A DNA stretch of 64,000 nucleotides from Epithemia pelagica. Lineage: Eukaryota > Protista > Bacillariophyta. A model generated the notes under the pieces. That model saw only the letters and a program-made list of their open reading frames with translations, was not told the origin of the DNA and ran no database searches. Positions 34-50,400 of the stretch are shown here, one piece after another. The stretch covers positions 1,426,001-1,490,000 of the forward strand of contig OX337240.1 of NCBI GenBank assembly GCA_946965045.2, written 5' to 3'. A program made the position numbers and the translations under genes. Position 1 is the first letter of the stretch. The number at the start of each line of letters is the position of its first letter.

Positions 34-1038
34 CTATTGTTGTTTTTGTTGTGATTGTGGTTGAAATAGTCCCACTCGATCCGCGAGGTAGAGAGAGCAT
101 GTGAGACTGGCAAAATGACTCAGCAAAATATTGGTATTGGCCTGTACAATCAAGACATCCAAGGGTTGGACGAATCCTACTGGCGTGGTGGCTCCGGCAG
201 CCGCCCCATAGACATTTCCAAAGGTACTTCCCGCCGTCAAAACCTTGAGCGCCAAGGATCCGACAATCTCTTCCGCCGCGAGCAGTGTCAAAAACAAACC
301 CACCAAGTTCAAACTGACTTGAACCCGAATCGCACGTCGTAACAGTTCACCCGGTGTGGCAGGAAGAAAGGGGGATTTTTGTCCCTGTCGCGAATTGGGT
401 GGTCTTTGTTGCTGCCTTTGTTCTTGTGCAGAAGAAGTTTGGGGTGGAACCACCGACTTGTCCCGAAGCAATCGACGAGAGAGTCTCGTTCCGTTGCCCC
501 ATGTCCACAAAATCGACAGAAAGGAAACCGTCAAACCCAGTGCCGACAAGAAAAACGAAGGTGGATTGCCCGCTCGATTGGCTTTGGTAGCATTCGACGC
601 AAACAAGAGAATTGTACAGCTAATCACCGTCAATATCGTTTGCGCCCACCATGAAAACCAAGATGTCCGTTTCAGCATTCGGCTCGCCTCTTGAACCAAT
701 GGATTGACGTTGTTGTTGCCCACACGAGGAGGGACGTTGTTACCGATACTTTCGTGTAATCGCACCAAAGCTCTGGAATCGTTTGTCGTACGCTTCCTCG
801 CCGTCAGAGACCTCGGAAATGAATATTTCTGCGAACATGAACTAGAGAAAAGGTTCCGCCGAGAACCTGAGAAATGTTTGATGCTTACGATCCCAGGTTC
901 GAATGGAGATTTCCCATTCACTGAGGAGTGATCGGATCTGCTTGTTGTCCTTTGAGATAGGTGAAAAGATGCAACAAAATTCATGCCGCTCAAGAGCAGA
1001 AGTGCTGCATAAGCGAAACTCCGATTCATGGCTCTCAT
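34..1038 (-). CDS. DUF3611-family membrane protein, probably plastid-targeted
   Basis: 334-aa ORF. Signal peptide ends in VAS-F (ASAF-like bipartite presequence). Three hydrophobic helices. C-terminal QPLDVLIVQANTNILLSHF resembles the conserved DUF3611 block as I recall it. Confidence 0.7.
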   Translation of the reverse strand: MRAMNRSFAYAALLLLSGMNFVASFHLSQRTTSRSDHSSVNGKSPFEPGIVSIKHFSGSRRNLFSSSCSQKYSFPRSLTARKRTTNDSRALVRLHESIGNNVPPRVGNNNVNPLVQEASRMLKRTSWFSWWAQTILTVISCTILLFASNATKANRAGNPPSFFLSALGLTVSFLSILWTWGNGTRLSRRLLRDKSVVPPQTSSAQEQRQQQRPPNSRQGQKSPFLPATPGELLRRAIRVQVSLNLVGLFLTLLAAEEIVGSLALKVLTAGSTFGNVYGAAAGATTPVGFVQPLDVLIVQANTNILLSHFASLTCSLYLADRVGLFQPQSQQKQQ

Positions 1039-1411
1039 TCTTGTCTGCTTGCCGTCGATGTGATCTGCTCTCTTTCGATCGTCTCTGATACTTATGTCTG
1101 TAGCAAAGGAGAAAGGAGTATAGCTCGTCGCCGACTCTTCTCTATGTTTGTGTCGGCGTCTTGAATCTTGTGCCCGTACACCTCCGTCGATGCAATGGCA
1201 TACATAATATCCGCGACCACTATTTTTGATTTTTGTAATCCATCACCATAAAGCCGATGACCACAAGAAACAACTGCTTCGATATGATCATGTAGCTTAT
1301 TAATCTTAGAACGGTAATGTAGAAGAGCTCATGTTCCTGAAACTATACAGTCACAATTATGGTTGTATTCAAAATCATAGTCAACATGTAAGTCCTGGCC
1401 TATTCGAACAC

Positions 1412-2731
1412 CTACTTGGTGACCTCTTCGATTTTCTTTTCCACCTTCTTCATGAAACCTTCGGCATCAAAATCTTGTACCATGTCTTTCAAGTTGGAGA
1501 TGCTATTCATGATACCTTCCGTGTCGGGCAGAGTCGCGGAATCATCGCTACCCTTGAAGGACAACTTGAGGTTTTCCAATTTGGCCGCGCCTTCACTGTT
1601 CAACTGAAAGCGTACAAAAGTGTCGGATTCTTCCAATTCGTAGACCGAGTTGAAGGCAAAGTATCCGGCAGCAAGGATTGGGAGGAAGATGTTGGGGTGG
1701 AAGAACATGCTGTTTTCGACAATGGGATGTCCAGTCAAGGCTTCCCACATGGCAAAGTAGGTAATGGCCAACATGGCACTACGTCCATGACTCACTTCCA
1801 CTTCTCGCAATCCCTTGCGCGAGTAGGCATCATCACCAATCGAGTTGTACAGATTCAGAGGATCAAAGCCATAGTCACCAGCCACACCCCACTTCCACAC
1901 GTCGGCCATGTCCTTGTTGTGCATGCGACCGGATGGTGTGTTGCTCACTTGGCGGAAACAAGTCTTGTACTCCAAGAATCCAATGGCACCGAAAATGGCA
2001 GCAAAGCCAATAAAGGAAATGGGGTTGAATCCATTCAATACAGATGGTGCGCATCCATTTTGCAACATCCAATCGGGCGCCAACAACTCCGAGATGGGCC
2101 ATCCGATGACGGCAAGCATCGCCAACCGAGCGTGACGGATCTCCGCTTCTTGCATTGTGTAGAGATCGTATTCTTCCGTGAATCCAAGGGGATCAAATCC
2201 ATAGTCCCCAGCATGGCTACCATCCAAGGCAGGAGGGCGCTTGAGGAATGGTACCGCAATCGATTCATCCTTGTTGCTGTATCGGCCACTGTGAAGACGA
2301 ATGAAAATGACGTGAAAGGAACATGAATGCAAAAATAAAGGTGAGAGGGAGGAGGGAAAGAGAAAGCATCAGTCTCATTTACATGGAGAGAGACAAGTCT
2401 CGCCGACTCTGCTTCGGCATACTGCTGCAAGGGACGGAAAAACTCACGGTTGAATCGTGCTATATCTACTGGAGACGTCGTCCGCGTCGGAAGCTTTCAC
2501 GGCAGCGATATCATTGATTGTCGCAGTCTTGGAGTCACCCCCAGAAACGATTTCCTCCTCGGATTCCTTCTTGGTCTCGGGTTCGGCCACAACCGATGCG
2601 AAGAGCGCTTCCACGTTCACCGAGTTTTGACTAACAGTTGGACTCGCCGAGTACGTGAAAGCAGTCACGGCCAAAGCCTGAAGAGCCAAAGCGGCAACGA
2701 TTGTTCCTGTTTGAGTGGCAAACTTGGTCAT
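1412..2731 (-). CDS. Light-harvesting complex (LHC/FCP-family) chlorophyll-binding protein with a long C-terminal extension; 2 exons
   Basis: Exons 2448-2731 and 1412-2288 (1161 nt, 386 aa) with a phase-2 GTGAGT...CACAG intron at 2289-2447. Presequence MTKFATQTGTIVAALALQALAVTA-F. Motifs GDYGFDPLG, EIRHARLAMLA, FDPLNL and EVSHGRSAMLA. Confidence 0.85.
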
Positions 2732-3218
2732 GGTGACGGTTGCTCTGTTGTTGTCGTGTGCTTGCGTTGCTTCGTCGAATGTTGTGGAGTACCCCAAGAT
2801 GTGAATTTGATGGGTCGTCGGTGGAGAAGCACCCAAAGAAATGGATTCCACTTTGTCCCATCAACAAATAATTACGTCACCATTCCAGTTTCCGTGCTTT
2901 TGGTCCTGTGACGTAAGATGCGAATCAAAGGCGATCATGGAAGAGTATCCGGAAGGAATCTGACGTGGTTTGCGTTCCACGATCGAAAGGAAAGATCGCA
3001 CATGCAAGCACACGCACCCCAAAAAGAGAAAGAGACCCACGTACACGTGTCTGTGTCTACGGTACGAGATTGCTACATGGCCATGACTACCTATCTAGAG
3101 TCTAGAGGCTCGTAGGAGTAAGCATAATGCATAGGAGTATAACCAAGCTTCCTCTTTCTACCGAAGCTGTTTATGTGTATCGTCTATCCAGATATTTTCA
3201 GTTTATTGTAACGATGGT

Positions 3219-4523
3219 CTAGACCGAGGAGAGCTGATACTCCTCAATGAGTTTATCAAACTCTTTACTGGAGAGATAGGTCAAGAATCCTACTCCAGTG
3301 GCATTGTCGGGGCCTTCGGCCGCAATGTCAATGACACGAGATTTGTTGAGGACCTTACGGACCACTTCGTCGGCTGTCTTGTGGCAAAGTTGTTTGGACC
3401 CGGATTGCAAAATGTCGGGGAGCAAGGCTGTGATCAAGCCACACACGTGCGGACAGGCCATGGACGTTCCCGACATGTCTTGGTATTCTCCATTGCCAGG
3501 TTTGAAACTAATCACATTCACGCCGATCCCGGCATAGTCGACTTCCGGGTTGGTGTTGGAAAAGTAGGCAACGGGCAAACCAGCCGCCTTGGAAACGGCG
3601 GCAACACTAATGCATTCCGGCCACATGGCTGGGAATCTGTATTTGAATTGTAAGGGCAAGTGGTGAGATTTCAACAATACCAGTTTTCAATGTCTCATCA
3701 TGATTCCGGTGGACACGTACGATCTTTCGTTGGTCATTGGATTATCATCGCCCTCATTTCCTGCAGCACAAACCACAATGACATCTCGCTCGTTGGCAAA
3801 CTTGACGGCTGTCCGAATGTTGAGCGATGCAAAGCGTCCTCCCAGCGACATGTTGATAATCTGACACCCATCGTAGACGGCTTCGACAATGGCCATGGCA
3901 ATGGCCTCGTCGACACCAATGGATCCTTCCTCACCAAACACGCGATAATCGTAAATCTCGGCATCGGGTGCCATCAAATGAATGGTACCAGCAACATGGG
4001 TGCCATGATCGTCTTGTTCCAAAGGCGTGCCGCCTCGGAACCACAACTGATGCTTGACCTGTCCATGGAATCCAGCATGTTCGGCGTCGACACCCGAATC
4101 AATGACACCCACTTTAATGCCCTTACCGGTCTTGCCCTCCTTGCGAAGCTTGGCACCGCCCGTGAGACGAATGCCCAATGGCAAGGCCAAGTCATCTACA
4201 GTTTCTTCGTCTTGTGGTGGTGGTGGTGCCTTGGCGGGTCGACGCACGACCGAAGGTTGCTTGATTGCCGTAACCTCAACTACTTTGGAAGACATGGTGG
4301 TGTTTGTGTTTGGTTCAATGACAGTGGAAGGAACGGGAGGTTCGACGACTTGTTGTTGTTGTTGTTGTGGAAGAGGCTCTGGATCCGATTTTGTGGTGGG
4401 AGCTGGCTTGGTGTGGCCTTTCTTCTGCTCTTGGTTTGTCTGGTTCTGGATATCGTCGTCGTCGGCTGTGGCGTCTTTGGGGGAGCAAAGCGAATCAAGA
4501 CACGATCCAAGACAATCTTGCAT
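3219..4523 (-). CDS. Subtilisin-like serine protease (peptidase S8); 2 exons
   Basis: Exons 3721-4523 and 3219-3636 (1221 nt, 406 aa); intron 3637-3720 is GTACGT...TACAG. Catalytic motifs VGVIDSG (Asp), HGTHVAGTI (His), AAGNEG (oxyanion Asn) and GTSMACPHV (Ser). Confidence 0.9.
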
Positions 4524-5262
4524 GCCTACTCAGGGAAGGACTGGAAGTGCACGTCTTTTCCACTCGAGAGCTGATACCTACCACAAAGGATTGTCACAAT
4601 GATTTCAATAATGCGGAACACCAACTCGATATCCCCGATTGATCTCGCGGAGAATGCACAAAAAGACACAAGACGAAGAGATAGGAGTGAATCCCATGAG
4701 CGTTCCCGGATTAACACCGGGTCACGCTTGCTACCCTTCTCATCCAATCCCGTAATTTGATTCCCGGACTCCAGATATTGCGCGACTCACACGCCGTTCC
4801 AAACGTGCATTCGCATTTGGATACGCACCCAAGTACTACCCGGCGGTGAGCACGGTGAGAACAAGAGAAGATCCAAAATTCTGATCCAAGTTGACACCTC
4901 TCTCACTTCTCATCGGTTAGAATGAAATGTCTCCGTTAAATATATTATCAAATTTACAGAAAGATCTTTATTACGAGTGATCAGGTGTATGTCTGGTTTC
5001 GTAAAGTTCTACGCACCTTGGTACAGAGGGTATCTTTTGGAGAGTTGGGATGACACCAACCCATGTGATCTCATCCTTGACACAGAATAGGTTCTACCAA
5101 GAGCGAGTTGATTGCTTGCTGTCTTGGAAACAAAGCAACCAAAAGATCGCATTTCCTACAAAATTACGTTTCCAGTTCGAACCTCGTTGTTCGAACCTCG
5201 TTCAACGTTTACCGAATCCAATCTCGAGATCCTCTCTCTCTACAGACACCGCTACAACAATA

Positions 5263-5724
5263 ATGGGCAAGCCGAAGAAGACCGCCGCCGTGGAAGAATT
5301 CAAGCTCTCCAAGTAAGTGGATGTAACGAGATCGAGGCATGAAGCGAATTGCGATCCTGATCGTGATATCCATGAGACATTTTCGCCTTGGATACAAGGA
5401 TCTTTTCCCTCTCTTGAGATCTTTTGAATTCCAGCCAAGAGACACGTATCTCACAAGTACTTTTTCCTCTACTCTTGTCACCGCTCTCCAAATTTTCAGG
5501 AAGGACCAAAAGAAAGTCGACAAGCTTAGCGCTCAAATCCCTTTCCATGAATCCAGTAAGTTTGATACATATCCAACTCAACCTTCCTTGGTACAGCCGC
5601 ATGACTAACTTCATTGTGTGTGCTTTTTTGCATTCCTACAGGAGGTAACAAGGAAGAAGTAGTCAAGATCCAAGAGCAAATCAAGGACATTGAAACCAAG
5701 GCCAGAGAAGCGGCTGGTTTCTAA
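5263..5724 (+). CDS. Small Lys/Glu-rich protein of unknown function, 62 aa, 3 exons (absent from the ORF track)
   Basis: Exons 5263-5312, 5500-5555 and 5642-5724 (189 nt). Both introns have GTAAGT donors and pyrimidine-rich CAG acceptors, and the phases match. Product: MGKPKKTAAVEEFKLSKKDQKKVDKLSAQIPFHESRGNKEEVVKIQEQIKDIETKAREAAGF. Confidence 0.75.
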
Positions 5725-44534: not shown

Positions 44535-45552
44535 TCACCATCCCTGTATCCGTTGTCGAAATTTGCGAAATGCAGATTCGGGTATTGGCTTTGTGAGCAG
44601 ATCTGCCAGTTGGTCATCAGTTGGAGTCGCGACCAAAGTGAGTTCGTCCAAGTGTGACCGAAAGTGGTGATAATAATTGTTAGGAGTAAGATGTTTTGTG
44701 CGTGGTCTGTATTTTGGCAGCTTGGCCATTTCTAGCGCACCACTGTTGTCTTCGAAGACTTGACAGTGAATCTTGGGTGGTTCCAAGTCGATGATAACTC
44801 CATGTTGTTTAGCTTCCTTGGCCAACTCCATTAGAGGTATCACCTCCCTCAAAGCGGTAGACAATGCAATGTACTCTGCTTCAGTCGTTGAAAGAGCAGT
44901 CAATGTCTGTAGTTTGGAAGCCCAAGTGATCGGACAACCTGCATAAGTGATGATCCATCCTGATCTCGACTTCGATGTCATGGGATCATGGGCCGCATGT
45001 GGTTGGAACCAGTTTCCTGCAAAATCAGAGTCAACCCAACATTCGAAGCTCTTCTTCGGATCGGGCTTCATATAATACCCTTTCTTGGCCGTCTCTTTAA
45101 GGTAGCGTCCAATCCGTTTGATTGCCAGTTGATGACTCTGTTTGGGTTGTTCAGAGAATCTGGCACATTGATGGACTATGAAAGAGATGTCCGGCCTCGT
45201 TGACTTTTCCAGAAAGTTGAGCTTGCCGATGACACTCCTGTAATGAAACTCCTTGTTCATCGGTGCTCCCTCTGGGTCCTTATGCAGTAATTGTTGGGTA
45301 GATGGGGTAGAGCGACCATTCGTATTATCCTGTAGGTGAAGGTCTTTCAATATTGAAGCGATAAGTTGTGGTTGGCTGAGTTTCAACCTTCCACCGGTTC
45401 TTTGCTCCACTTTGACACCCAAGTAATCGTTGACGTCACCCAAATCGTCGATGGTGAAATTTTCCTTGGCTCGTTTGAGATCATCAATTGCTTCTTCAAT
45501 TTCCGTCAGTTTGGGGCTCATCAAGATGCAATCATCGATGTACACCAAGAAT
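44535..45552 (-). pseudogene. pol: Outer element pol, 3' fragment (RT C-terminus and RNase H)
   Basis: Motifs LVYIDDCI, CWVDSDFAG, TEAEYIALS, FEDNSGA and QLADLLTKP. Truncated at the TIR insertion. Confidence 0.9.
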
Positions 45553-46929
45553 CCCTCGGTATCAGTGTCCACTGCTTAGCTGTTTTTTGTCTGTGCAACC
45601 TTCATAGGTTCCCAAGTGGACACAGACAGGAAATTTCACTTTTCGTCTGTCCTTTTCACCAAAATGATTCCTCGTGCTGGTGGAAATGCCGGCGTGCAAG
45701 TAGCCGTTGGCGGTTGGCACCTTCCTGTGACCGTGACCACGATTCAAATTTGGAATCCTTTCATACTCGTCACAAAAAATTTCACGCGGTGTCAAAAACA
45801 TCGACATTGACCATGAAGCGAGCTCTTTACGAATCCTTGTGACCTGAAGCAGTATTTTGGTTGGTTTTCTCTCTTGTTACTTGTTGTTTGTCTCTTAGCT
45901 TCTTTCATGCCCTGCATAGTTTTCTCACACGTTATCTCATTTATCTTTGTCCATGTTAAAGTTGATGGTTTGTTGTCCTTTGATTTCGTCGCAATGAAAC
46001 GGAGGACAAGTCATTGTAGGCCATTTGCCACAACTTTTCCTTTGCTTTATTCGTAGTGCTGTTTGATTGTTGGTTGGTTGTCTTCATATCTTTGTAGCAT
46101 GTTTTTTTACACTCATCATTGTGTTTCGCCCATCCATCATCCGTGTCGACCACAGAACCTTTCGTTGAGTGGTAGATCTAGATGACGACAACTGCAGCAT
46201 CTTGTTGTCACTAGTCCTACTATTACTAGAGGAGTAGTCGTCATGGATCATAGAGTCTATCGGATATGCTGGAAGATGGCTTCTTACTTGCTTCAGAGTG
46301 TCATGGTTGTTGAAAACAAGGAAATAACACGCTGCAACGATCTTACAAAAACTATGAAAGATGAGAACTAAACTACGGATAAAAACTCCTCCAAAATTCA
46401 AAGAAAAGAAGCTTTATGTTGTGGTTTCCAATTTTAAGCCGAGGCTCGAATGGAGAATAGGCATTCCATAGGCACAAAACTTTCACTCTCAAAGAAGTGG
46501 AGAGAGACAGTTGGCGAATGGAGAATATCAGAAGAGAAAAACGAATACAAGAGTGAGGGAGAAGTTAGAATGACAGTACAAGAGCTGTTGTCATGGAAAC
46601 ATTTTGTGCGTTCAAACTTACCTCAATTGCATGAAAGGCGACAATTCATGCCATGCCATTGTGAACTGTGATGGCCTCTGTGTGATTTTATGGCGGATTT
46701 GGATGGCGCATTCTGCGAAGACCAACCAACCGTCATCCACACAGGGCCGCTTGCTGGGCTTGCGTCTGTTTCATGAACTGTGAAAACTCCAGCTGGGTAT
46801 GCGCGCCAATTTGCTTTTTAGCCATTTCCATTTGAGTCAAAAAGGAAATTTCCTGTCTGTGTCCACTTGGGAACCTATGAAGGTGGCACAGACAAAAAAC
46901 AGCTAAGCAGTGGACACTGATAACGAGGG
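45553..46929. mobile_element. Non-autonomous DNA-transposon-like element with 85-bp terminal inverted repeats
   Basis: 45553-45637 and 46845-46929 are inverted copies (83/85 identical) beginning CCCTCG[G/T]TATCAGTGTCCAC. No intact internal ORF and no TSD visible. Confidence 0.75.
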
Positions 46930-47058
46930 TTCCCACGGTAGAACAAGCAAGGGTCTAATTTACTAGGCGTAAAGCCCAGATCTTTAAGCCCTTTTTTCCA
47001 CACCCTAGGCGCTTGCTTAGTGCCATAGATGTTGCGAAGTAGTAGTAGATCTACATCC

Positions 47059-47210
47059 GTGGGGAGGCACGAGGAGGGGCTATTGACTCCGAGAAGGGCA
47101 ATAGCTCCGAGAAGTGGACCGCCTTCTAAATCCGCTTAAGCGGATTTGGCGGTCCACGACGAGGAGCTATTGCCCGCCGAGGAGTCAATAGCCCCGACAA
47201 GTGCCCCCAC
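47059..47210. other. 152-nt rod-like inverted-repeat (hairpin) structure with periodic internal loops
   Basis: Perfect stems: 47076-47090/47181-47195 (15 bp), 47096-47108/47163-47175 (13 bp), 47114-47123/47148-47157 (10 bp) and 47066-47070/47201-47205. The apical palindrome AAATCCGCTTAAGCGGATTT lies at 47128-47147. Confidence 0.9.
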
Positions 47211-47407
47211 GACCAGTAGGGGATGTCGCTTGCTTCTATAACCTCCGAGCCCCCCCCCCTAATTAACTGTCACACTTTTTTCCCAGGACTGTTTTTTTTG
47301 CTCCGCACTAGCTTTTCTTGCTCCGCACTTGCTCGCGTATGAGAGCACGGCCGTCGTGGGCAATATAAGGCTATATTAGACGAAAATCCTACTTCCATTC
47401 CGAGGAG

Positions 47408-50400
47408 CTATAGTAGTTTGAGACAGTGTGTCTTTGGAGAAATTCCTGGCTGGTAGTGATAGCCTTGTGGGAAATTCATATATAGTTGGACCTCTGCAGG
47501 TGCTTGAGGAAACGCTAGCACAAAATCGAGTTGTCGTGTGTGCCAACCTCGGAGCAAGGACAAAACAAAGAAGAACCGTAAGGTAGTCCACATTACTACT
47601 GGGGCATAAGTTTCCCAGTAGTTGATGCCATACTGTTGTTGGCCTCCATGCACGTTAAGACGTGCTTTCCATTTGTAGATCTCTCTGGTGTCGATGCGTC
47701 GTTTCCTCTTCATGGACCAAACCATGTTGACAATCTTTGTACCTGATGGTACCTGTGAGCGTCTCACAACTTTCCAATGTTGTCGTTGCTCATGGTCTGC
47801 CAATTCTTTGTCCATGGCAATGCAAAATTGCTTGCGGTCAGGCTGACTCATGGCCTCATTGAGGTACATGGTGTCAGGGTCAGCACTGGCTGCAAAGGAT
47901 CCTCCAGTTGTTGTTGGATCTCATATTGTTGTTGAGCTGTTGGGACCAGTTCATTGTCATCCTGGTCCACTAGCGTCTCCCATGCCACGAGTCCTTGTTG
48001 TCTTTGTTGGACTCCTTCTGCGTATCGTTGAGTATTCCGTACGACTCGTCCACTGCGCGTTTGTCGCTGTAGAGTAGGTTGCTCTGCCTGACCTCCCTCA
48101 GGCTCTGGCATGGGTTGATGGATTGGTTCCAAAGGTGGCTCATCCACTGGAAGAGGGACGATGTCATCTTCCATTGGAGGTATCAATGAGTGTTGCTGAT
48201 TGGGAGCTCTGACTGGTCGTAGGATGTCAGCTTTCTCAGGCAACATATTGGTGGATTGTTGATGCGTTCTTTGTTTCTTCTTCACTGTGAGCCGGCTAAG
48301 ATATTTCCGGTCAGGCTCTGGTGTATCAAAGTCTGTGGCTTTGCCAGTCACAGTTTCAAAGAAATCGTCATGTTTCACATGGAATTGGGGAGATACATGA
48401 CCGGTTCTCGGATTCAGAACCAAACTGATAGACCTGGCGTGATTGGGAGATGGTCCCAGATAGATTCCAAGTCTTGAACGCACTTTCCACTTGTGCAGCC
48501 CCTTCTGGGCTTGTAAATTGTTGTCCAAAACGTAGGTTGGGCATCCAAAGGTGTGGAAATGCCGAATCTTGGGCATGACTTCCACTCCAGAGAAGATTTC
48601 CTCGGGTGAGCGTTGGTCTTTGATTGTTGGGATTGCATTAATGGCAGCGTTGGCAGTCCTTAATGCATATGGCCATAGATGTATGTTAAGCATCCTAGGC
48701 CATTTCCCAATCGCATACAAAAGCATAGTTCGAGTCTGCTCTTGTAAGTCCCGAATCTTCTTCTCTGCAATACCGTTTTGGAAATGGGCATTGACTCCAC
48801 AGTAAGTGAGTCCCTGTCCATGGGCCTGACAGTCTCGGATGAAACCATTGTCAGCAAAGCGTCCGTTGTCAGCATGGTAATGCTGAATCCTGACTCCGCG
48901 ATCTCTCGCATATCGTTCAAAGGCGTGCTTGGCCAGTACCGTCTCTTCGCTGGTGAGTCGCCTTTGTAGGAAGACGAAAGACAAGCGTGAGTACTGATCG
49001 ACGAACACTGTGGCATATTTGTACCGCCGGGTTGTCAAGATGCCCTTGAGTTGTCCGATGAAGCCCACAGTTGTGGATTCCAGTTGATCCACAGAGACAA
49101 CTTGTCCTGGTGCTGTCACTGTGCAAACTTGTTTGCCTGTTTGTTGTGGTTTGGTTCTCCATGGTCGCCTTGTCGTCTTGCCATATTGACAGGCTGGGCA
49201 CAAAGGAATTTTGGCCTCCAACAGTTTCTTGGGCAGCTCATTTCGTTTGGCCATGAGCTGGATTCTCCGGAATGAGACATGGCCCAATCGGTAATGCCAA
49301 CGCAACAATTCATCGTGTGGTGTTAAATTGCGTGGCTCCTCGTCATCAGGTATGACATGTGGTTTGTCTGGTAAGGCAAAGTCCACTTGACTTGTTGTTG
49401 GCAAGTCGTCAATGGTGACTGGCACGTCGTCACCTTGTTGTCTGATTGGTGGATCCGTCGTTGTTGGTGGATCGACTGGGTCAGGTGGTTGAAATGACAT
49501 GTCGTCGTCATCCAACTGTCGTGGCGCAGTGGATTCATCATCAGGTATGATGTGAGTCTCGAACACTGCTTCTTCCATCTCGTGTTCCCAGTTGTGTGCC
49601 ACATTAGCCATGAAAGTGGCAAAGCGTTTGTATCCGGATGCCGTTCTTGCAAGGCCAATGTTGAGTTTAGTGTCCAATGGGATAGACTTCCTGTAGCGTC
49701 GTTGATCCCAAAACAACACGACATGTTTGCTTGTCGTCATACACCCGGTGCCTTCTGCCATGGGTTTTTGATCATGGGCTTGTTGGGCCCATTGTTGTGG
49801 ACACAGTATTCGGTGAGAAGCATCAGGCACATAGTAAAGATTGCAAATTACAAACCTGTGCTCCACTCAATTGTCATCTTCGAATCTCCAGGCCACTGTT
49901 CCTCTTTTCGTAGCTAGCACTTTTTGGCGACTGATGCCTGTGACTTGAGCACTGACATTCGTCGGAGGCTGTAGGAAGTCAGCAAGATCATTAGTGATGC
50001 ATGCTGACGCTCCAATGTCGATGAGTATTACAACGGAGTCTGTGTCAAACGCGGTTTCTCGTGCTTGAGGCTCGAGTTCTGCGTCGTCATTCGACTTGGT
50101 AGTTGCCATAGTAACCGTGTAAACTCGCAAGTGGTAGCAATGAGTGCGCGCCAGACTTCTAAAGCGGACACCCGCCTCGCTTGCGTCTGCGAGTCCGCAT
50201 GCTATTGATCCAGGTTTCAACTGAACATAGCCAAGGTAGCATAGACCTGCGCCATAGATATCGCATCCAATGAAGGATGATGGATGGTCGTTGATATCGT
50301 TTCGGCACATATGGTTCATAGTCATAGGCAGGTAAGTATATATCTACAATGACTGTTGCTGCGTTAATCATGGCCACCAGTGTCATTCCTGGGTTGCCAC

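Follow-up and report, generated by a model that had tools for sequence, protein, structure and literature searches.

What is a long, rod-like hairpin with ordered mismatches doing inside a broken copia retrotransposon of the diatom Epithemia pelagica, and to what kind of sequence does it belong? We address this question in a stretch of 64,000 nucleotides (hereafter the window, meaning the whole stretch). In the initial annotation, the hairpin was placed in an insertion spanning 46930-47410. The boundaries of this insertion were set by aligning 26 other copies with their flanks and by a clean pair of an empty and a filled site (L039 and L014). Homology among the copies begins a few bases before the hairpin and stops at ...CTATAGTAG (window 47416). 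The mobile unit is 47046-47416, and the annotated left bound was off by about 115 bp: since 46932-47045 aligns to the uninterrupted copia relative L043, the interval 46930-47410 merges copia sequence with the true 371-bp element. The locus reads as follows.

Up to 45551, minus strand: copia.
45552..46931, no strand assigned: unrelated 1.38-kb element with terminal inverted repeats (TIR) of ~91 bp (45553-45643 and 46840-46930).
46932..47045, minus strand: copia coding remnant between the two insertions, single-copy in the genome, aligning to L043.
47042..47045, plus strand: target half-site GTAG (pattern GTnG), host copia sequence immediately left of the insertion point.
47046..47416, plus strand: non-autonomous hairpin element of subfamily A, 371 bp, from TAGATCTACAT... 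to ...CTATAGTAG, with the final G ambiguous with the target.
47046..47056, plus strand: left terminus TA-GA-TCTACAT; the two bases after TA differ by subfamily (AT, TA, GA, GT).
47386..47416, plus strand: right-terminal ~30 nt (...ATCCTACTTCCATTCCGAGGAGCTATAGTAG); 47386-47417 matches L060:5317-5348 at 81%.
47417..47424, plus strand: right flank (TTTGAG + AC); insertion favours targets with AC at these +7/+8 positions past the element.
From 47417: copia resumes.

The hairpin belongs to its own 371-bp element and is, as had been supposed, distinct from the copia and TIR repeats. The 1.38-kb TIR element shares the copia host, at a distance of 114 bp from the hairpin element. It is present in at least 40 copies, many of which are 99% identical, and thus looks recently active. 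A copia paralogue that is 97% identical to the right flank of the window (L042:~2081, G000 C11) loses homology at window 47425/47426, that is, 1-2 nt from the AC of the target site.

A search for homologues had been set beforehand as a check on the hairpin. Large numbers were found, and the hairpin is not single-copy. Subfamily A comprises at least 27 near-full copies with 92-98% identity in the 60.5-Mb genome. The 15-nt core CGAGRAGGGCAATRG has 189 exact matches in the genome compared to 0 for the reversed control, and we count about 190 hairpin modules, mostly gene-less short copies. The hairpin element is multi-copy and has recently been active. The locus is not an assembly artefact, since both junctions are bridged by contigs of three DNA runs from the same organism (public runs X1-X3, genomic DNA contigs). 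A contig from a biofilm metagenome (run X4; window 47169-47416) contains a copy of the A family whose flank is that of the L020 locus; thus, Epithemia pelagica or a close relative was present in the biofilm sample. Further features of the 371-bp element lie outside the hairpin. A poly-C tract just 3' of it (47250-47259) has 6 to 14 C depending on the copy, and the right half contains two 20-nt tandem repeats (47293-47332; a T-run followed by GCTCCGCAC). A TATA-like stretch (GCAATATAAGGCTATATTAG, 47360-47379) lies ~40-55 nt from the right end and points outward; were the element to form a circle, reading from this stretch would cross the joint and enter the hairpin.

Folded as RNA, window positions 47058-47211 form a rod-like hairpin of 154 nt with a minimum free energy of -127.1 kcal/mol, compared to -67.7 ± 4.8 kcal/mol in 200 shuffles (z = -12.5). 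An intact copy of the family folded as DNA gives -74.5 kcal/mol (z -12.6). The position and overall anatomy given in the initial annotation hold, except that its outermost stem of 5 bp is replaced by 7 bp, an AG bulge and 4 bp.

47058..47211, plus strand: rod hairpin of the window copy, with stems of 7, 4, 15, 13, 10 and 8 bp, three 5x5 loops, a TTCT bulge and a TTAA tip.
Outer stems of the rod: CGTGGGG/CCCCACG (7 bp), AG bulge, then GCAC/GTGC (4 bp).
47071..47075, plus strand: loop 1, GAGGA, with partner GACAA at 47196-47200; the 15-bp stem follows.
47091..47095, plus strand: loop 2, GAGAA, with partner GCCGA at 47176-47180; the 13-bp stem follows.
47109..47113, plus strand: loop 3, GAGAA, with partner GACGA at 47158-47162; the 10-bp stem follows.
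47124-47127: TTCT bulge between the 10-bp stem and the apical palindrome.
47128..47147, plus strand: apical stem-loop, a 20-nt palindrome, AAATCCGC-TTAA-GCGGATTT.

All six loop strands of the window copy fit the previously described pattern G-N-[G/C]-N-A, with complementary centres. The apical stem is conserved across copies while the tetraloop varies (GTCA, ATTA, TGTA, CTAA); the family tip is GTCA, and the TTAA tip is private to the window copy. This copy is slightly damaged, lacking 10 nt (GCTCCGCGGA) that are present in other copies and there form an extra stem and a fourth 5x5 loop (GCGGA/GACCA). The annotated recurrence of hairpin sequence near the right junction was also found, with CCGAGGAGCTAT at 47400-47411, near the right end of the element. 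An alternative branched fold, in which GCTATTG pairs with CAATAGC, had been proposed too. This pairing exists in subfamily A and is lost in all other subfamilies; being confined to subfamily A, it is not a conserved feature. Some copies carry structural variants of the rod, including a tandem duplication of the first ~23 nt (L027), an expansion of the G-run in loop 1 (L022) and a 58-nt deletion that takes most of the left arm (L028 and L057), the same joint of which (window 47079-47138) is found in the DNA runs X1-X3. An Rfam scan of the hairpin returned sub-threshold matches to generic hairpins only (MIR6457, mir-1253, RRE). We rejected a precursor of the miRNA MIR6457 (RF04102), as its 43.1 bits compare to a gathering score of 140 and the match is of a generic long-hairpin kind.

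A subfamily with ~82% identity over the hairpin reveals that the module is the left end of a far larger repeat. In the autonomous-type B element of L060, which extends from ~264 to 5347 (~5.1 kb) and has the right end ...CCGAGGACCAATGGTAG, the hairpin is located at the left end, as it is in 1.6-kb derivatives (L050, L053) and in two further lineages (L063 and L064/L065). What the 371-bp element has in common with the 5.1-kb form is confined to the palindrome and the last ~30 nt, a pattern that cis-acting parts would be expected to leave.

The L060 element contains one conserved gene with two exons, which are separated by an intron of 80 nt (2761-2840) with canonical GT-AG ends and were searched separately. 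Exon 1 ends at 2760 and exon 2 spans 2841-3542. Downstream of this gene, L060:3647-4633 holds a threonine-rich, low-complexity candidate ORF with tandem repeats of ~80-100 nt. With Pfam, no match to the L060 product was found even at E <= 10, so that the threshold of PF00589 (Phage_integrase) was not reached, and ten long homologues were essentially blank; one homologue (P0064) scored 17.4 bits for PF00589 compared to the cut-off of 27.1. Neither a reverse transcriptase nor any other Pfam domain was detected in ORFs of at least 120 aa in L060:264-5347, and precomputed Pfam annotations were blank for the genes inside the L063, L064 and L065 elements.

The class of the protein emerges from structure prediction. 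A first prediction from 5 sequences (pLDDT 36) was superseded by a version based on a profile of 38 homologues, which reached a pLDDT of 84 and a pTM of 0.76. When the model was compared to 48,161 representative structures, 25 of the 28 chains with Z >= 2 were tyrosine recombinases or type-IB topoisomerases. The top neighbours are Cre and XerA (Z 5.8, rmsd 3.1-3.5, 114-130 aligned residues), followed by the Crypton-derived domain of QRICH1 (Z 5.3); XerH, IntI4, Tn1549 Int, lambda Int and Flp are also among them. Since the Z-scores are middling (at most 5.8), the weight of the fold evidence lies in the exclusivity of this list. A Foldseek search against the PDB gave no significant match, and its weak rows were recombinases; language-model neighbours of the protein likewise point to a tyrosine recombinase. 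Among solved structures, XerA (E = 0.14) and IntI4 (E = 1.2) match the sequence best, in its C-terminal catalytic part, and the R, H and Y of the protein align to the catalytic R, H and Y of XerA. Conservation across the 38 sequences is 90% or more at K32, R182-H183 and Y192. The upstream exon has an invariant Arg-I (FxLRG/SFRCLE box), and the first H of the H-x-x-R motif is an R in the consensus. The predicted catalytic-domain fold and the catalytic residues are thus those of the tyrosine recombinase superfamily, and the protein is a member of a remote family below the sensitivity of Pfam.

We next consider how the hairpin differs between lineages. Folds computed for each lineage show that every 5x5 loop consists of a 2x2 mismatch, one Watson-Crick pair and another 2x2 mismatch, giving the frame G.A, N.N, G-C (or C-G), N.N, A.G. 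Within each loop strand, G is fixed at position 1 and A at position 5, position 3 is a complementary G or C, and positions 2 and 4 vary. Most of the 2x2 units are 5'-GA/3'-AG, and GA/GA units are found in A, B, D, F, G and L069. In DNA as well as RNA, G.A steps in tandem form stable sheared pairs when flanked as pyrimidine-GA-purine. If the G.A steps of the hairpin form such pairs, the rod would be nearly continuous. The centre of the loop switches between subfamilies; in one loop, A has G-C and B has C-G.

For the covariation analysis, we aligned 11 different copies that represent subfamilies A, B, B2, C, D and E, and RNAalifold recovered the rod from them. In this alignment, 95.1% of the cells are paired compared to 34-44% with slid partners. 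Both sides have changed in 15 of the 67 pairs, a value reached in 0 of 500 shuffles (7.8 ± 1.4) and compared to 2-6 in slid controls; these copies represent about six independent lineages, and most of the double changes trace to the split between A and B/C. The second stem illustrates the divergence of the arms.

Lineage A: GGGGCTATTGACTCC (5' arm) / GGAGTCAATAGCCCC (3' arm).
Lineage B: GGGGCGCCTAACTCC (5' arm) / GGAGTTAGGCCCCC (3' arm).
Lineage D: GTGGCTCAACTCC (5' arm) / GGAGTTAAGCCAC (3' arm).
Lineage F: GGGGCGTAAC (5' arm) / GTTACGCCCC (3' arm).
Lineage G: GGGTAGAATGAC (5' arm) / GTCATTCTCCC (3' arm).

Lineages D and F have their own recombinases, which are 45% and 66% identical to that of B. 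As judged from these alignments, compensatory substitutions have maintained intrastrand pairing in lineages with recombinases of 45-66% identity. A still more distant case, from another organism, is the metagenomic contig L069, whose recombinase is ~27% identical and which has an equivalent rod just upstream of the ORF, ~120 nt from the start codon; its stems are unrelated and its loops are GACGA/GAGAA. A comparable palindrome is absent from three other distant relatives of the recombinase on contigs of 3.5-6.5 kb, where the element ends may lie off-contig. The selected structured module of a mobile element that the initial annotation had postulated is thus borne out by many homologues, by the covariation of the stems and by a loop frame that, together with its central G-C pair, is kept across lineages. 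Another hairpin-bearing repeat, family G, has at least 54 copies (L005:1886-2200; L073:1500-1700; L072, L074-L076). It starts with TATTAATACTTCCC right after host ...TAG and has a rod of ~190 nt at its very terminus, in which the loops again follow the GA/GA design and one stem is GGGCAATGG; in one case, a G copy lies directly against the right end of an A-family copy.

The two strands of the module are not equivalent. Purine-purine pairs are possible only on the strand that is sense to the recombinase, whereas the opposite strand gets C.T mismatches, and the G.A-forming strand is always the recombinase-sense strand (L060, L063, L064, L069). Inside the palindrome, CGAG occurs 5-8 times on the top strand and 0 times on the bottom strand. 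Folding as DNA gives -74.5 kcal/mol for the top strand compared to -68.1 kcal/mol for the bottom strand, a difference in the expected direction that is not decisive.

How the element inserts can be read from its flanks. The empty site L039 is a paralogue of the host repeat of L014, with 91-97% identity. The empty site reads ...GAAGTTG|ACTATTAC... and the filled site reads ...GAAGTTG[ TATATCTACAT...CTATAGTAG ]ACTATTAC..., so that this single clean empty site reveals no target-site duplication, with one G being ambiguous. GTnG is found in the same register in nearly all tabulated copies and in the aligned copies of the B/C subfamilies; the empty site L039 also has it, and L043 has it in the form CTGTAG. 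On the right side, A occurs in 38 and C in 35 of 44 flank sets at +7/+8, and the base before AC is biased towards G. In the empty site L039, the corresponding bases all belong to the target; the left GTnG and the right AC are thus target preferences, and insertion favours GTnG|N5-(G)AC. The right end of the element, GTAG, mimics the GTnG of the target, and the GT...AC dyad of the target may resemble a minimal recombinase core site. The window site and L043 (70-80% identity) agree on GTnG and AC and disagree on the six bases between them, which would be explained by an in-frame 6-nt difference between the copia copies. This disagreement had suggested a coupling sequence as in Tn916, that is, six bases carried over from the donor; we rejected this option, as these bases are target sequence in L039. 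A MITE of a DDE/TIR transposon was rejected because of the ends (TA..TCTACAT and ..ATAGTAG) and the lack of a duplication, and a SINE because of the termini and the absence of a duplication. A Helitron or other HUH element was also rejected, as there is no Rep/helicase gene, the right-flank bases are not T-specific and the hairpin occupies the terminus on the upstream side of the gene. We also examined whether the palindrome extends across the joined ends. For the B element there is a modest signal (z -3.0; 32 nt paired compared to a control mean of 12.6 and maximum of 41), and for the A subfamily of the window there is no support (z -0.4; 7 nt).

It is well supported that the mobile element behind the hairpin is a Crypton-like transposon with a tyrosine recombinase. 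Cryptons (Goodwin et al. 2003; Kojima & Jurka 2011, PMC3212892; including CryptonS of oomycetes and the diatom Phaeodactylum) likewise have a tyrosine recombinase as the sole recognisable enzyme. They also lack a reverse transcriptase, TIR, LTR and target-site duplication, the last point resting here on one clean empty site. They have been described as having no inverted repeats, no duplication, and direct repeats of 4-6 bp that reflect microhomology (PMC3212892, PMC13465315). Here, the corresponding short direct repeat or microhomology is between the flanking GTnG and the element end GTAG, and an intron-containing gene is shared as well. The likeness to Cryptons is one of published features, and the tie to Crypton recombinases is the structural match to the DUF3504 domain of QRICH1 only. 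TATGG has been reported as the terminus of most CryptonS, whereas the termini here are of the GTAG type. Furthermore, Cryptons have been described as being without structural end features, with ends that are hard to define (PMC3212892, PMC13465315), which makes short derivatives hard to annotate. Unlike described Cryptons, the elements found here have a conserved rod palindrome of 150-220 nt within about 7 nt of the left end. The words 'hairpin' and 'palindrome' are absent from PMC3212892 and PMC13465315, and neither a terminal rod palindrome nor loops zipped by G.A pairs are described in the Crypton literature that we searched. Both the enzyme class and the mode of insertion, guided by microhomology and free of duplication, resemble those of Cryptons and are known, whereas the structured hairpin end would be a new feature.

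Two other groups of elements invite comparison. Helitron2 and IS200-IS605 elements, which use HUH enzymes, have subterminal hairpins near the cleavage site with compensatory mutations and no terminal inverted repeats (PMC3627910). Unlike these, the elements studied here encode a predicted tyrosine-recombinase fold and no Rep/HUH or helicase, their hairpin is ten times longer and they lack 5'-T(C)...CTRR-3' ends. DIRS, Ngaro and VIPER elements are likewise eukaryotic, with a tyrosine recombinase and unusual terminal repeat structures. However, they encode reverse transcriptase/RNase H, which the hairpin elements do not, and their ends are marked by split direct repeats or by inverted terminal repeats plus an internal complementary region, none of which occurs here.

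We consider it probable that the rod is a cis-acting end structure of the Crypton-like transposon and that it is used as folded DNA. The components of this proposal differ in strength. That the hairpin is a conserved end of a tyrosine-recombinase (Crypton-like) element is very likely, and that it is needed in cis for mobilisation is likely, although less so. A folded DNA, either a single strand or a cruciform, may be the active form, which we regard as a serious possibility. We are more hesitant still about the suggestion that, in a family of eukaryotic DNA transposons, the tyrosine recombinase uses a folded single strand as its substrate, with a rod of ~200 nt zipped by one-strand G.A pairs. 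According to this proposal, the 371-bp derivative would keep only what the recombinase of its ~5-kb relative needs in cis, namely the rod-bearing left terminus and ~30 nt at the right end. The module would work as folded DNA, either as a one-strand hairpin or as a cruciform extruded from a supercoiled circular intermediate. It would sit about 5-7 nt from the point of cutting and joining, and it might serve as a recognition or assembly scaffold for the recombinase, as folded attC does for integron integrases. The reading as a folded strand drew on the strand-specific G.A pairing and on the absence of a duplication.

Integron attC sites and the attP(+) hairpin of CTX phage are folded single-stranded substrates of IntI and XerCD, respectively. 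Both systems are bacterial; the attC sites are 57-141 nt long and have extrahelical bases and an unpaired central spacer. The analogy with both systems would lie in an imperfect palindrome next to the crossover of a tyrosine recombinase, with structure conserved over sequence. From the alignments, the palindrome of the diatom elements has this arrangement, with the outermost stem ~7 nt from the insertion point. In attC and CTX attP(+), ordered unpaired or mismatched positions likewise make the strands non-equivalent, and the duplication-free insertion would fit a single strand exchange that replication then resolves. Unlike attC, the rod has periodic symmetric 5x5 G.A loops and is found in a eukaryotic host.

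Three other explanations for the module can be weighed against the use of folded DNA. It could be a duplex array of about 8-10 direct sites (CGAGRAG, ~18-20 bp apart) for the recombinase or an accessory protein, similar to arm-type sites; the palindromic stems would then be secondary, and loops would mark where both arms carry the same oriented motif. The strict strand asymmetry of CGAG (5-8 on the top strand, 0 on the bottom strand) is equally expected from such an array, the spacing of the motif is regular, and the motif CCGAGGAG recurs at the right terminus (47400-47407 and L060:~5331). However, an array does not require intrastrand complementarity, yet the stems are kept by compensatory changes, and there is no sequence conservation of the motif beyond loop positions 1 and 5, position 3 keeping just its complementarity. 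A change of the loop centre from G to C on one arm is matched by a change from C to G on the other, which argues for a constraint on pairing rather than on a recognition sequence. We thus consider a duplex array unlikely.

The rod might instead act as RNA, either as a structured 5' leader of the recombinase transcript or as a hairpin that feeds or evades small-RNA silencing, an option raised in the initial annotation too. The very stable RNA fold would suit such a role, as would a G.A-forming strand that is constantly sense to the recombinase gene and the position of the L069 hairpin ~120 nt upstream of the start codon. However, the ~190 mostly gene-less short copies keep the module intact without having a use for a leader, and the sole Rfam match, MIR6457, has 43 bits compared to the gathering score of 140. 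In addition, the rod starts ~7 nt from the element end, so that a promoter must be outside the element or act across the joint of a circle. This makes a role as RNA rather improbable in our view. We dismiss as highly implausible that the palindrome is an inert by-product of inverted duplication or hairpin-primed synthesis carried by a young repeat family, for although the subfamily A copies are 92-98% identical and their shared structure alone therefore proves nothing, the architecture persists on different stems where the recombinases are 66%, 45% and ~27% identical, the differing stems of the divergent lineages exclude recent recombinants sharing one palindrome, and copy-back would make perfect palindromes rather than ordered asymmetric mismatches. 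An origin of the palindrome by protelomerase-like resolution or by copy-back was rejected, as either would give perfect palindromes.

Lastly, we return to the folded end structure and to what it would mean for these elements. Crypton transposition has not been worked out in the literature that we searched (PMC3212892, PMC13465315). If the proposal is true, the rod would be a eukaryotic counterpart of integron attC or CTX attP(+) sites, and the duplication-free, sequence-guided insertion would be explained by a single strand exchange that is finished by replication. The conserved, strand-specific hairpin near the cut site is diagnostic for these elements and for roughly 190 small derivatives, and it offers a concrete cis-acting substrate for biochemistry. 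The repeated unit GA-S-GA/GA-S-GA is a natural, evolutionarily validated periodic purine-purine zipper. The finding leads to the testable hypothesis that eukaryotic tyrosine-recombinase transposons use folded DNA, like integrons and CTX phage.
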